Assembly: GCF_006345805.1 (NCBI RefSeq)
Contig: NW_021835997.1
Span: 124,001 to 188,000, forward strand
Source of the DNA: Octopus sinensis
Taxonomy: Eukaryota
DNA length: 64,000 nucleotides
Reading direction: 5' to 3'
Shown: positions 6,105-50,350 of the stretch, piece after piece
Layout of the letters: every line of letters begins with the position of its first letter
How positions within the stretch are numbered: the first letter of the stretch is position 1
Program-made: the position numbers and the translations under genes
The notes under the pieces: model-generated
What the model was told of the DNA's origin: nothing
Databases searched by the model: none
Seen by the model: the letters and a program-made list of their open reading frames with translations, nothing else

Positions 6105-8320
6105 AAACTAAAACCAATTCTTCGCTCAAAGTATCGCAATTTAGGAAGAAAAATGGGAAAATCTGTGACATTTGTATGTAAGGTGGGGAAATTATGCTGT
6201 GTGACTCCTGTCCTCGCTCTTATCACCTGATTTGCATTCTTCCTGACATGAACAATCCTCCAGAAGGGGTTTGGAATTGTCCGACATGTGTATATCCACT
6301 TCCCGACCACGTATAGGTAGAGAGAGGTCTCCAAGTAAGGACAGAGGCCAAGAAAGACCCCTCCGTTAAGAAATTGAACGAGCCGGTCTGTCGGAAGTGT
6401 CGTTCCTCTGCAAACGTGCTTGTCACGTGCAAATCCTGTGGATATATTTTCCACCCAGGCTGTGTCGGGATACCCCCTGAAGAGATAGACGAGGCGGTGG
6501 GTCATTGGGTTTGCAAAAAGTGCAGAGTTTGGCTGTGTTGTAGAAATGTGGTAGGTTGAGCCTCTGCCAGGGAAAGTCGAGAAAATTATGAATTGGCGGT
6601 CTGAGGGAGACCAGGCGGATTCCCCACGGTCATATTTCGTCAAATGGCTGGACTGTTCGTACTGGAATTGTTCGTGGGTGAGTTGTACGCAGATGGAGGT
6701 CTGCCACCCTTCCTTGCTTCGGTCGTATTTGAAGAGAGCCGACATGTCGGTTTTCCCTGCGAATTATCGATATTCGTCAAAGAAGGAATGTTCTCGGTGG
6801 GAAGAACTCACAACGAATGGAGTCCGACCAGAGTGGCTGACAATTCAGCGTTTGATATCTCAGTTCTGATTATTTTCTAATCTGTAGTCACAATTCGTTG
6901 TATTTGGTCAAATGGCGAGACCTTCAGTATGATCAATGCACGTGGGAAAAGTCTGATTCCGAAATAACGGACATGGAAGAACACATTGAGAAATATCACA
7001 AGCACATGTAATGTCCATTGAGGTTATTTTAGTGAGTCAATGTTCGACAATTCGCAGGATAATAGCAATATTCACGTTATTGTTGAGTCTAATGTTTAGA
7101 AAGAGAATTCGACGAGATTGCATCCATATCAGACTGAGGGAGTCAACTGGCTGACCCATTCGTGGAAGAATAACATAAATACAATTTTGGCTGACGAAAT
7201 GGGGTTGGGCAAGACCATTCAGAGCATAATGTTTCTCTCCAAACTGTTCACCGAAGAGAAAGTGACTGGTCCATTCCTGCTGACAGTACCTTTGAGTACA
7301 CTCATCAACTGGGAAAGGGAGTTTGAGATATGGGCACCACAACTATACGTGGTCACCTACATCGGGGATAAAAAGAGTCGGGCAATCATCAGGTAGTCTC
7401 CTCTCCCGATTGTAGTGAATATGAATTCGAGTGTGTGGACAGTGACAAAGTGAGGTCAAGAAAGAAGCCCCACCACCGACAGAGGCAAAGACGTGTCACC
7501 AAATTCCACGTGTTATTGACCTCATATGAGCTGATATGTATTGACAAGAAGATTCTGTCGACATATGCCTGGAAAGTGCTTATTGTGGACGAGGCACACA
7601 GACTTAAGAATAGTTCTTCCAAGGTTCCCATTCTTCTTATTCTTAGTTCTTCCGAATATTAACTCACTACTTGTTCGGTTACAGGCTAAAGTTCACGGAC
7701 AAGTGGAGATCTACGGACTGAACTACCGTCAACGGAAGGCGTTTTACAACAACGTGATGAGATACGGGTTGCCGAATACAAGACAGTTGGCAGTCTGGAA
7801 GTATTCCTTTATATAGCAGAACACACCGTGACTTGAGTTGTAAATCTCTGAAGAAGTTGGAGAAGTACTCGGAACTGTTTTGCAAGCACGTGGGTGACAC
7901 TGAGGCGGACAGTCCGATTGAGGGAGTCAATAACAAGCAAGTGTTGATGAAGATTGCCATAATGAGTATTATCCGGAACAAGGTGATGGAGTACGGACAT
8001 GTCAACGGGTTCTCCATTGACGAGTACAATCCGAATGAGCAGACTGAGGGGGTCGACGACTGAGACTTTAATATATGTGACAGAGGATTCACTGATTTGC
8101 ACTCCATGTGGAATTCGGAGGAGAAACTTGTCTCGAAGGGTAAGAGAGACTCGATTTGGAATAGAAAACACGACTTTTGGCAGGCATTTCTTAGTATTTC
8201 TATTGCTGACTGTCAAGTTATGTGTACGGGCGGACATAAACAACGACAAACACTTCCAGATAATCAACAGTCCATTCAGTGACTATGTAAACAAACCTAA
8301 TTATCTCGAAATCAAGAACG
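6105..8320 (+). pseudogene. CHD4: CHD3/4/5 (Mi-2) chromatin remodeller pseudogene, copy A, internally deleted
   Basis: Two PHD fingers, two chromodomains, SNF2 start ([24 protein letters not shown]), then a jump at ~7675 to the RQRKAFYNNVMRYG and RKHDFW/NYLEIKN C-terminal domains; TAA in PHD1; introns 6527-6554, 7393-7415, 7624-7646. Confidence 0.92.
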
Positions 8321-8324
8321 TCCT

Positions 8325-9005
8325 GGTTGGTGGAGTGAAGGAGTGGGTGTCTATGTGTGGCATATCCTCCCAACCTCCCTCCTTTTATTATTAGACGAGA
8401 CCCGTCCCCCAAACTTGCCAAGATGGGTCGGCAGTATTTGAATTGGCGGGCAACATCAGCAAAGGATAGGAGGCAGTCAAGTTCAGCGAGGAGTGCCACC
8501 AGTCGAATGAGGGAGAGAGCATTGAGTTGAGAGAGAGGAGAATGTCGTACTCACTGTCACATATCGTCCAGCACTCCAATGACAACCACCCTTAGGGGAC
8601 TTGTAGTGTGCCCCCTTCTCTGTCGCAAATTTCAGTTCGAACCCATCCAAATGTATTTCCTCGTTCTCGTCCGTGAAGGGGAGGTTGAGTAGGAATCCCA
8701 CCTGCCGTGAGGAGGACTGACTCACGTGGGGGAGATACACCACTTTCCACTCGCCAATGCAGGAAGGAAGCTCCGACAACTCTTTCATGGCCACATGACG
8801 AAAGACAGTTGTGAATGGTCATTCTTCACTGCCATTAAGCAGAGGAGTACATTCGTCCAGTGCACTCGAATAGTTCGGACGGATGAGGAACTGGTTATTC
8901 GATTCTGCCTGATCAATGTCCAGCACACGTTCAAAGATTTCCCACAGTTTATTCAGGCCTGTTCTCTCTTCAGCACTCCACAATGTCATCACACACTGAC
9001 AGTTT
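8325..9005 (-). pseudogene. MSH5: MutS homolog 5 internal fragment, copy A
   Basis: WKVVYLPH/VGFLLNLP, LDGFELKFATEKGAHYKS, LAELDCLLSFADVARQFKYCRP, GG/RHPLL; two 24-nt introns; frameshifts. Confidence 0.82.
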
Positions 9006-9861
9006 AGAAGGCAGTTGCTGACAAATATTTTTTATTGTTGCTGAAGCTTTTAAGGTCTACGTGATCCTACGAATGACTTCAGACATGATGATCTATATCA
9101 GAACATTTTTATTTAAACGCCAAGACCACGATAAGAGTCAAACAAAAGTCACGTGATCCCGATGCAGTCGACGAGGGACCTCATCTTCGCTGGGTGATCT
9201 TTCCACGAGCCCACACAAGATCCCACCGGGCGGCAGGCCGTTTTTGACGGAGCCGGATTAAAGTGTTTGAAATTGAATCGGGTTCTTAAAACTGTAAACT
9301 GAAATCGATCAATAAGAGAAATGTGGAAAATCATTCGGCACGCGGCAAAGAGCAATTAAACTGCATCTGCAGAATATATTCAAAATAATTGAATAATCTG
9401 ATAAAGTTCTATGCGAAAATATCACATAAGGAGGAGAGGAAATCTGACACAGCACCCTAAAACACAAGAAACGGTCAGCACCTTTTTTTCGATGAGAGGT
9501 GTAGGATACTTTGATAAACCCAAATGTGATACCGTCATTATGGACACAGCCATTTATAAAGAAACGACTCTGCATTTTTCATACCGGTTTATGGTTTTTG
9601 GAAGAATAAAAGAATTTTTACCGTAAAGGTCTTTTCAATATAGGTTTAAAGAGAAGTCCGCGTCTACATGCTTAAAAACATTCACGGATTTCATTCTTAC
9701 TGAATTTGCAAGCAAACCGAAACACTTAAAAAGTTTTCTTTATTCTGTCGGCGTAAACAAAGCCTTTAACTTTGTCTCAAGGAGAATTCTATCAAAGAAG
9801 ATATTTCCAGAGAGACTCAAATTATGGATCTCACATCTTAAGTGGAAAAATGAAAGGGTGT

Positions 9862-48427: not shown

Positions 48428-50169
48428 TATAGTTTGCCAGGCGTGTTCTTCAATGCACGGCCGTTGTCATTTAGCGTGTTTAGGGCAGTGCAAGGGTGGT
48501 AGAGTTTTCGCGAAGCGAATAGGAATTGTGCTCCTCTCATGTTTAGATATTCCTCTATCGGGAGGAGGTTGGTTTCACAGTGCAGATGGTCGATGGGTGT
48601 TGATTTCAGGCACCCGGATATGATGCGCATGGCTTTGTTTTGAATTGATTGGAGAGCCACAGAGGAGCTCATAGATAGACAGGGAGCCCAACTCGGACTC
48701 GCGTAGCTTAGGACAGGGCGAATGTATTGTTTATACACACGTTTGAGAAGTGGTTTCTGCACACCAGTGATGCGACCACTTATTGCTTTCAGGATATTTG
48801 TACGCCTGTTAGCCTTGTCAGAGATCTTCGAGACATGTTTATTGAAGGACATCGTTGGGTCGAAGGTTAGTCCGAGAACAGTGGGGTGTTTTGATAGTGG
48901 GAGAACAGAGCCAAAGAGAGATAGGTTGGGATGTATGTTTGATTGTCTTCTGTCGGAAGATAGTAGGGTGACCGAGGACTTGGAGGACGAGGCCTCGAGC
49001 CTGTTTTCTCTGAGCCAATTCTCAACGGAGTGGAGTTGTTGCTGAAGGTTGAAGGAGGCAGCTTTGTAGTCTTCGTGTTTTGAGGCAATAATAATGTCGT
49101 CAGCGTAAGATAGTGTCAAGTTGTTAGGGTCGTTTGCCGGGAAGTCGTGCAAGTAAAGATTGAACAGGGATGGAGACAGCACGGAACCCTGCGGTACCCC
49201 GTTTGGAAGATAGCGTTGTATGGAACAATGGTCCATGAGGGAGACGTAGCCCATGCGGCCAGATAAGAAGTTAGCAAGCCAGGATTTGTAGTTTGAGTCT
49301 AGGCCGGTCGTGAGAATTTTCTTGGTGAGACCGCAACGGGGGACGCTGTCAAAAGCTTTAGATATGTCGATGGAAGCTAGAACTGTTCGTTTAGGGGGCC
49401 TCTTCTCATTGAAGCCGTCCAGGACGAACTGGGAAAGCGTTGTTAAGTGAGTGGTTGTTGAGTGCAGTGGTTTGAAGCCATGTTGGGTGTGGGATGTTGG
49501 TAAGTGTTTCGAGACTCGTGAAAGGATTAGTCTTTCGAGGATTTTAGATAGCGTGCACAAAAGAGAGATTGGGCGGTAGGAGCTTGGAATGCCAGCCGGT
49601 TTTTTCGGTTTGATTAACGGGATGATACGTGATTTTTTCCAAAGAGATGGAATTTCGTTTTTTACAACGGAATTGTTGAAAATAGACACTATAGCGTTGA
49701 TGGCGTTAGGGCCAAGTCTCCCGGGTACTTGCCAAAATCAATGGCCTAAACCAATGTTCACAGCCAATGAAAAAAATCCACGACTTCATTTCAACGTCGT
49801 CCATTCTAAGGCTGAAGCCTAACTCTGTCCTCAACAAACTTCCTCCGGAAGTTCACCCCTCCGAAATGCTTCTGGAGCGTTCCGCTCAGATCAACCATGC
49901 TCGTTTCCGCTCGGGCCATCACCACTCACTAAACTCCTACGCTCACTCATTGAACGTCGTGATCTCCCCGCTATGCAACCTCTGCTGTGCCGAAGATCAC
50001 TCAACTGATCACCTTTTCCGCTGCCCTGTTCTCCTCCCTGTCCGCAGGAAATTTGCTGTCCACTCCCCCGAGGTCCTTTGGGAGCAACCCGCGAAGGCGC
50101 TGTTGTTTCTGCTAGCCGCCGGTCTCATACCCTAATGTGAGACCGGGGTTATGCAACAACAACAACAAC
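48428..50169. mobile_element. I/Jockey-group LINE with 5' inversion (48428-49717 minus, 49718-50169 plus)
   Basis: RT motifs DISKAFD, GVPQGSVLSP, YADD; C-terminal CNLC..DHLFRC; (CAA)n tail; 12-bp TSD aactcttgttta. Confidence 0.93.
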
Positions 50170-50181
50170 AACTCTTGTTTA

Positions 50182-50350
50182 AGTACTTCATGCACATCAA
50201 AGTCCCCCTGGATATTGAAATCACATTATTAAGAGTATTTAAAGGACTTTGAATAGTTTTCTACCCAAATAAACAACCGCTCCACCTCGTTGTGATTGAC
50301 CCTCCAGACCCCATTGACCACATATTTGTACTCGTGTCGACTTTTAGAAA
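50182..50350 (-). pseudogene. AMPK beta-subunit CBM48 fragment, split by the LINE
   Basis: HEYKYVVNGVWRVNHNE[25-nt intron]KTIQSPLNTLNNVISI..DFDVHEVL resembles HQYKFFVDGQW..SQLGTVNNIIQV..DFEVFDAL. Confidence 0.6.

Follow-up and report, generated by a model that had tools for sequence, protein, structure and literature searches.

How do partial copies of unrelated genes, joined end to end in both orientations, come to share one short interval of an animal genome? The question is raised by a window of 64,000 nucleotides from the Octopus sinensis assembly (NCBI RefSeq GCF_006345805.1, contig NW_021835997.1, positions 124,001 to 188,000; numbered here from its first base). A first-pass annotation saw in it a patchwork of intron-retaining fragments from about ten genes and proposed a locus that repeatedly captures host DNA, perhaps an undescribed system. 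The best explanation, and one to which about an even chance of being correct can be given, is that the locus is a cluster of non-processed pseudogene fragments, set in a part of a compact, ultra-short-intron genome where transposons abound and genes are few, and consists of duplicated DNA that has decayed by deletion. On present evidence a new molecular system is not indicated, since the locus fits a known kind, the duplicated pseudogene cluster.

Stop-to-stop open reading frames (ORFs) on both strands were compared with Pfam and with the sequences of solved structures. Among the ten gene identities first proposed, those of CHD, NSF, PIWI, SF3B3, EXOSC4 and AMPK-beta drew strong matches, whereas the MutS, proteasome, acid phosphatase and SLC17 pieces drew weak ones only. 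The label MSH5 in particular was not established: the piece matches MSH2 residues 442-501 at E=0.0017 and the MutS_III family at E=0.24, and is called here MutS-family. Two further pieces, the tail of an aldehyde dehydrogenase (ALDH) and a bZIP-like stretch, had been missed. Each fragment amounts to only 10-45% of its parent (CHD4, NSF, PIWI, SF3B3, RRP41, acid phosphatase, ALDH and the proteasome beta subunit, PSMB), and intact parents presumably lie elsewhere in the genome. Judged from their sequence, the gene fragments are dead partial copies that were made as DNA.

The CHD piece belongs to CHD subfamily II, with Pfam matches to PHD, two Chromo domains, SNF2-rel (positions 1-144 of 290), CHDII_SANT-like and CHDCT2. 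It maps colinearly on human CHD4 (1912 amino acids, aa) to aa 454-685, 725-888, 1415-1543 and 1711-1796, ATPase lobe 2 being absent, and keeps at least five introns. In the first of its two copies, copy A, aa 888 is joined to aa 1415 within an intron-like gap of 61 nt (7624-7684), as a genomic deletion would give, which supports the decay of a larger copy. The first PHD finger carries a TAA nonsense codon at 6179-6181 in copy A, where copy B has CAA and a 1-nt deletion three codons on. Because the disabling mutations differ, this exon was still open when the locus was duplicated and has decayed independently since. Since its exons look open where those of B are broken, copy A was considered as a living, truncated gene; this was rejected, because PHD1 contains the TAA codon and an in-frame stop lies where aa 1543 joins aa 1711.

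The annotation was right that introns are kept. Gaps of 23-31 nt, bounded by GT..AG and placed exactly at the frame changes of CHD, NSF and SF3B3, read as retained introns, and the PIWI fragment has one gap of this class, recognised by eye only. They are of the same class as the introns of the intact SLC6 (21 and 27 nt) and WD40 (26 nt) genes nearby; throughout the window, in these genes and in the fragments, introns are GT..AG and just 21-31 nt long. Copying at the DNA level had been concluded from intron retention. The conclusion holds, but that argument is weaker than it seemed, because introns of 21-31 nt could persist in transcripts. It is carried instead by three other observations. All true transposon insertions in the window have terminal inverted repeats (TIRs) or tails together with target-site duplications, whilst nowhere in the window does a tail or a target-site duplication adjoin a gene fragment. 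Tails of the (CAA)n type occur only at 35078 and 50154, at the two insertions of a long interspersed nuclear element (LINE), and a long T run lies near a fragment at one place only (16053-16081), where it forms part of a LINE tail piece. Secondly, CHD retains its introns together with the hybrid intron-like 61 nt at aa 888/1415. Thirdly, the tail-to-tail joins described below are not products of template switching.

These observations bear equally on a rival in which a LINE reverse transcriptase copied unspliced transcripts and template switching joined gene to LINE sequences. Such a route might be suspected because introns this short are perhaps spliced inefficiently, so that an RNA intermediate is compatible with finding them, and because the proteasome and NSF pieces are each followed by a transposon ORF piece on the same strand. 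Yet both LINE insertions possess the tail and duplication that are missing next to the fragments, at least five CHD introns survive along with the hybrid one, and the tail-to-tail junctions are unlike the products of template switching; the route is scarcely credible. Thus the locus lacks the marks of processed pseudogenes, in that introns are present and a 3' tail with flanking duplication is absent at the fragments, and displays those of a non-processed pseudogene cluster, namely partial genes, retained introns, and disabling mutations with neutral evolution.

How the copies may have been reduced to fragments is suggested by a duplication within the locus itself. Self-BLASTN reveals two colinear direct repeats of a block of about 15-17 kb, copy A and the more eroded copy B, the portions of A repeated in B being 3625-4052 and 5767-21045. 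A 428-bp repeat, R1, opens both copies, a unique spacer of 412 bp separates them, and their outer flanks are unlike. The order in copy A is CHD (+), MutS (-), LINE reverse transcriptase (+), PSMB (+), ALDH (+), a pogo element (-), NSF (+), bZIP (-) and PIWI (-), and each of the seven gene pieces in this list is present twice. The extent of the patchwork as first described therefore stands only in part: since A and B are two copies of one block, half of it had been counted twice.

Of 10,322 aligned bases, 223 (2.2%) are substituted between A and B, which also differ by at least eight insertions or deletions, of 82, 99, 141, 84, 211, 224, 449 and 1637 bp, whose breakpoints show the overlaps of 0-4 nt that end joining gives. 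Copy B is without 7141-7365 and 15914-17551 of copy A. Copy A has to itself an insert of 1.7 kb that bears a satellite, a CHD exon of 224 bp, the pogo element, and 1.6 kb containing most of the NSF piece; B has to itself a segment of 449 bp, a LINE insertion, and an array of six 158-bp units derived from the proteasome piece. With substitutions at about 2% and so many changes of 80-1640 bp, DNA loss must be very fast relative to substitution, some 4-15% of length per lineage at about 1% substitution. Loss by large deletion at such a pace would be able to whittle a few duplicated segments into abutting fragments.

The fragments appear to evolve neutrally, and no function is seen in their sequence. 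This is suggested by the disabling mutations in CHD, NSF and copy B of PIWI, the NSF piece having at least two frameshifts and a lost Walker A lysine alongside one retained intron of 24 nt, and by A-B differences that are no rarer in coding (1.7%) than in non-coding sequence (2.3%). Counts of these differences by codon position (18:6:15) come from few sites in approximate frames and were not used as evidence of selection.

The history would then have run as follows. One or a few gene-dense pieces of DNA would have been duplicated into the interval; genes here are 1-6 kb long, closely spaced and on both strands, and because of this a single duplicated stretch would carry many of them. Released from selection, the copies would have suffered large deletions and rearrangements, joined at their ends to leave exon-plus-intron remnants abutting in both orientations. 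LINEs, pogo and hAT elements would have inserted among the remnants, and the block of about 15-17 kb would have been duplicated once more to give A and B, which decay independently. Most of the junctions would thus have been made by deletion within larger duplicated segments and not by many separate captures.

The abrupt junctions in both orientations to which the annotation drew attention are confirmed. CHD (+) and MutS (-) meet tail to tail at 8316-8321, with an overlap no greater than the triplet AAC at 8316-8318, the former ending in ...LEIKN and the latter in ...HPLLHSTNQDV. EXOSC4 (+) and SF3B3 (-) also meet tail to tail, within about 10 nt (43601-43612), and the window holds no second copy of this junction. 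All four ends lie in mid-exon. A single deletion spanning two convergent neighbours would leave joins of just this kind, and they support decay. The PIWI and bZIP pieces, meanwhile, follow one another on the same strand, as two adjacent genes of a compact genome would.

Mid-exon junctions with 0-3 nt of overlap are also expected of repeated independent capture, in which double-strand breaks recur and short DNA from unrelated loci is inserted as end joining or template switching repairs them. At least 12 unrelated genes are represented, on both strands and in some cases by pieces of only 113-400 bp. Furthermore, several observations sit awkwardly with decay by deletion. The proteasome (113 bp) and ALDH (about 130 bp) pieces are very small. 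In CHD copy A, where about 60% of the gene is gone, there is a single nonsense codon and no exon frameshift, and SF3B3 and EXOSC4 are without any disabling change, so that all three have few disabling substitutions for their truncation; they would be better explained if already partial when copied than by slow erosion. The decay of NSF is plainly further advanced than that of CHD, suggesting unequal ages. The GC content of third codon positions (GC3) is heterogeneous, falling into a rich class (CHD 0.57, NSF 0.67, SF3B3 0.62, MutS 0.51, WD40 0.51, LINE reverse transcriptase 0.53) and a poor one (PIWI 0.36, EXOSC4 0.30, SLC6 0.34, DNA transposons about 0.27-0.31), with the abutting EXOSC4 and SF3B3 differing strongly; the split may reflect codon bias linked to expression, or source regions that differ. 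Lastly, transposon ORF pieces lie in scrambled order (9627-10040 +, 10845-11372 +, 15914-16559 -, 17832-18134 +), for which deletion alone is insufficient.

GC3 was set aside as a sign of foreign or multi-locus origin, being too weak because resident genes vary as well (SLC6 0.34, WD40 0.51). Against repeated capture, at least ten independent events would be needed, when one or a few duplications would suffice given deletion at the observed rate. The CHD piece, 2.2 kb long, multi-exonic, colinear and internally deleted, has the character of a decayed larger copy and not of a short filler, and the right-hand 'pieces' appear to be resident genes struck by transposons. Repeated capture was therefore not demonstrated, the large deletions seen between A and B being fast enough to make fragments. 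It is unlikely, though far from negligible; decay of duplicated DNA is rated somewhat likelier because it requires fewer events and because rapid large deletion is directly observed.

A more specific form of capture, also raised by the annotation, would make the fragments the cargo of Pack-type TIR elements or Helitrons, with the A/B block or 9063-13849 as the element. The second of these intervals is bounded by a near-perfect inverted repeat of 37-45 nt, which encloses four pieces (the LINE reverse-transcriptase piece, the proteasome piece, a transposon ORF piece and the ALDH tail); the same 428-bp R1 begins both block copies; and pogo, hAT and LINE elements have been active recently at the locus. 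No target-site duplication was found at the arms of the inverted repeat, however, and within the 64 kb neither this repeat, beyond its occurrences in A and B, nor R1 has a third copy. The major fragments (CHD, MutS, NSF, PIWI, SF3B3 and EXOSC4) lie outside the repeat, and no frame of TIRs plus target-site duplications surrounds any fragment block in the window. Among all ORFs of at least 45 aa, no Rep, Helitron helicase (Helitron_like_N or PIF1-type) or matching transposase domain was found. Both pogo elements, whose ends are intact, carry only remnants of their own transposase. For want, within the window, of duplications, further copies, Rep or helicase domains and a transposase, capture by a transposon is unsupported and very improbable. 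The inverted repeat could be the ends of some element or a small inverted duplication. Two other candidates were rejected: an ORF at 5457-5651 that looked PIF1/Helitron-like by eye matched no Pfam family even at E<=1, and R1 as the long terminal repeat (LTR) of a giant retroelement has neither a third copy after B nor LTR features.

The patchwork might also be an artefact of assembly, through chimeric junctions or through two haplotypes of one locus laid in tandem as A and B. Haplotypes from a heterozygous or pooled sample could diverge by about 2% and differ, as A and B do, in which whole transposons they contain, and pooled or amplified material is often used in sequencing parasites. The CHD-MutS junction recurs in copy B, near 24195, and because it is common to both diverged copies it is real, predates the duplication and is no read chimera. 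More generally, mosaic junctions shared by A and B and followed by independent mutations are not random chimeras. The window has no N gaps, the 412-bp spacer is unique, and the outer flanks of the two copies differ. The haplotype version, moreover, would remove the tandem duplication only and leave the patchwork. An artefact is on these grounds rather improbable.

Decay of duplicated DNA need not account for the right end of the patchwork, since the stretch from 46.8 to 50.4 kb looks like resident genes hit by transposons and not like captured pieces. AMPK-beta, regarded earlier as a loose piece, has both of its domains and is split by a LINE with a 10-bp target-site duplication. The WD40 gene, which sits between AMPK-beta and the SLC17-like piece and reads through, is probably an intact resident gene. 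The SLC17-like piece stops at a pogo element, beyond which no continuation is recognisable. AMPK-beta, the WD40 gene and the first 200 or so codons of the major facilitator superfamily (MFS) gene are closely spaced on the minus strand in the style of a compact genome.

Table 1. Features of the window, in order of position except that the block copies and gene fragments come first.
Feature	Position	Strand	Remarks
Block copy A	3625-21045		R1 repeat, CHD, MutS, LINE pieces, proteasome piece, ALDH tail, pogo, NSF, bZIP, PIWI
Block copy B	21458-36872		Colinear with A; more eroded
CHD3/4/5-type pseudogene fragment, copy A	6134-8321	+	PHD1, PHD2, two chromodomains, first half of ATPase lobe 1, C-terminal domains
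MutS-family fragment, copy A	8316-9031	-	Lever/clamp region to GRHPLL motif; ATPase domain absent
Proteasome-beta-like piece, copy A	10738-10850	+	113 bp (GGVVLAADSR); Pfam positions 5-42 of 189, E=0.003
Aldehyde dehydrogenase C-terminal fragment	~13475-13600	+	ALDH1A3 aa 438-485; frameshifted
NSF D2-domain pseudogene fragment	16828-17570	+	aa ~510-740; mostly deleted in copy B
bZIP-like coding piece	18466-18900	-	Weak match; downstream of PIWI, same strand
PIWI-clade fragment, copy A	19414-20931	-	PIWI domain only; Siwi aa 580-880 of 899
CHD fragment, copy B	22254-24200	+	1-nt deletion in PHD1, SNF2 exon deleted, more frameshifts
Tandem array, 158 bp x 6, copy B	26723-27674	+	Unit = proteasome piece + 45 nt of transposon ORF
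PIWI fragment, copy B	35292-36759	-	Frameshifted
Histidine acid phosphatase fragment	41756-42324	+	aa 183-303 of 354; weak match, E=4e-5
EXOSC4/RRP41 fragment	43356-43601	+	aa 6-87 of 245, E=7e-11
SF3B3 fragment	43612-44038	-	aa 527-652 of 1217, E=1.6e-31; one in-frame short intron
SLC6 transporter gene	1-1167	-	Left window edge; apparently intact; 21- and 27-nt gaps
DC-STAMP-like gene	1854-3323	-	Pfam E=5e-12; adjoins SLC6; apparently intact
Inverted repeat, 37-45 nt, near-perfect	9063-9106 and 13813-13849		Arms 4.7 kb apart
LINE reverse-transcriptase piece	9627-10040	+	RVT_1 positions 36-164
pogo/Tigger element, copy A only	14235-15528	-	24-nt perfect TIRs, TA duplication
Inverted repeat arms, copy B	24964-25000 and ~30740-30779		
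5'-truncated LINE insertion, copy B only	33765-35090	+	(CAA)n tail; 12-bp duplication TTCATGTTAATA
Non-autonomous hAT miniature inverted-repeat element	34372-35053		Nested in copy-B LINE; TIR CAGAGGTTTCC..., 8-bp duplication CCCTAATG
pogo element	44795-46114	+	25-nt TIRs, TA duplication; inserted at end of SLC17-like piece
MFS/SLC17-like 5' part	46097-46700	-	~First 200 aa; MFS_1 E=1e-4; SLC17 likeness by eye only
WD40-repeat gene, WDR55/THOC3-like	46872-47833	-	Reads through; single 26-nt intron 47376-47401
AMPK-beta gene	48027-50425	-	CBM 50232-50425, C-terminal domain 48027-48354; LINE in between
LINE insertion in AMPK-beta	48430-50171	+	(CAA)6 tail; 10-bp duplication CTCTTGTTTA at 48420 and 50172
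Retroviral-type integrase remnant	51558-52371	+	
Tc1/mariner transposase	54497-55527	+	Right flank; other unassigned ORFs nearby
Retroviral-type integrase remnant	58694-59511	-	

The setting of these features is AT-rich (GC about 30-46% in 2-kb steps) and abundant in transposon remnants. The SLC6 and DC-STAMP-like genes, AT-rich themselves with a GC3 of about 0.34, mark the left border of the junk interval, and the right flank (50400-64000) is a further transposon graveyard in which no cellular gene was recognised. The LINE in AMPK-beta has its 5' part (48430-49737) inverted relative to its 3' part (49718-50171), a twin-priming pattern, and its family uses a CAA-repeat tail in place of poly(A). 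The insertion specific to copy B is of the same LINE and, with the hAT element nested in it, is evidence of very recent transposition.

The proteasome piece is fused directly to the transposon ORF piece at 10845-11372, and the array of 158-bp units, which are 99% alike, was born from this chimeric junction. Divergence between A and B is 13% in the 113-bp proteasome part, against about 2% in its flanks, which hints at gene conversion from another copy elsewhere. The ORF pieces at 10845-11372 and 17832-18134 (also 27624-28052 and 32322-32624) carry a CxC...H...C motif and then RPDG...WD.T...K..KY; they match no Pfam family and by eye resemble the zinc-knuckle and restriction-like endonuclease module of some retroelements, the two halves lying in reversed order and 6.5 kb apart. 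Copy A alone contains a 96-bp satellite (4164-5062, 9.4 copies, 95% matches), preceded by a (TGTC)n microsatellite at 4074-4140, and a 102-bp repeat present twice (5273-5477).

Searches beyond the window placed its genes at some distance from known sequences. The closest proteins in the collections searched, by best score, have identities of 43% for SLC6, 55-63% for CHD and about 41% for PIWI, and in an exhaustive search of representative sequences all PIWI relatives were at or below 50%. A chimeric query of several fragments, aimed at the parents, returned only distant SF3B3 orthologues, mostly fungal. An exact-product look-up with two ORFs of the window yielded no record, an exact-pattern scan of metagenome contigs with a CHD exon and the LINE 3' end gave 0 matches, and Rfam matched nothing in the window.

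Parallels can be drawn with several known kinds of locus. Mosaics of non-processed, or duplicated, pseudogenes are known from segmental-duplication hubs, for example the primate pericentromeric and subtelomeric regions, where disabled parts of unrelated genes, introns included, likewise lie side by side among repeats in either orientation, and where the resulting mosaic is itself duplicated again. The present locus is far smaller, with pieces of 0.1-2.3 kb, and lies in a compact genome with introns of 21-31 nt. Gene fragments also accumulate by DNA-based copying on degenerate or supernumerary chromosomes (the Drosophila Y, B and germline-restricted chromosomes), where, as here, a patchwork of gene pieces is mixed with transposons and satellites, amplified locally and left to neutral decay; in contrast to these, the window has the apparently intact SLC6 and DC-STAMP-like genes at its left and the WD40 gene in its right end. 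The closest match is with the duplicated-fragment mosaics of these two settings, in miniature. Pack-MULEs, Pack-CACTA elements and Helitrons, which capture gene fragments in plants and bats, similarly build chimeric arrays of exons and introns from several genes by copying at the DNA level, but their defining termini, target-site duplications, family copies and Rep/Hel proteins were not found in the window.

Finally, piRNA (PIWI-interacting RNA) clusters and pseudogene-derived loci of endogenous small interfering RNAs are small-RNA sources that contain gene and pseudogene pieces and are defined by their small-RNA output. A gene-poor interval rich in transposon and gene fragments resembles them. 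It differs from a uni-strand piRNA cluster in the mixed orientation of its fragments and in having A and B as direct repeats, and no long inverted pairs of gene fragments able to form hairpins were found in the window. A bolder reading would make the interval a dedicated trap for pieces of the organism's own genes, PIWI among them, whose expression would supply small-RNA precursors for regulating the essential parents. It is highly improbable, no feature of the sequence hinting at it, and if true would provide a gene-directed counterpart of the piRNA cluster in a parasite lineage with ultra-short introns.

Apart from myxobolid myxozoans and the dicyemid Dicyema japonicum, no animals are known to have introns shorter than 30 nt (PMC13644364). 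In myxobolid genomes of about 200 Mb an abundance of transposons, mostly DNA transposons, has been reported (PMC8855578). Intron length thus suggests that the DNA probably derives from a parasite of one of these groups. The lineage to which the window belongs has, or had, PIWI-clade, MutS-family and CHD3/4-type genes. With introns of 21-31 nt, standard gene finders will mis-annotate such sequence, reporting the pieces as truncated 'essential' genes and inflating paralogue counts. If loss by deletion is the correct reading, the A/B pair would represent a rare direct gauge of the speed at which dead DNA is lost from an ultra-compact, fast-evolving animal genome, roughly 10% of length per 1% substitution in each lineage, and would bear on how such genomes shrink.

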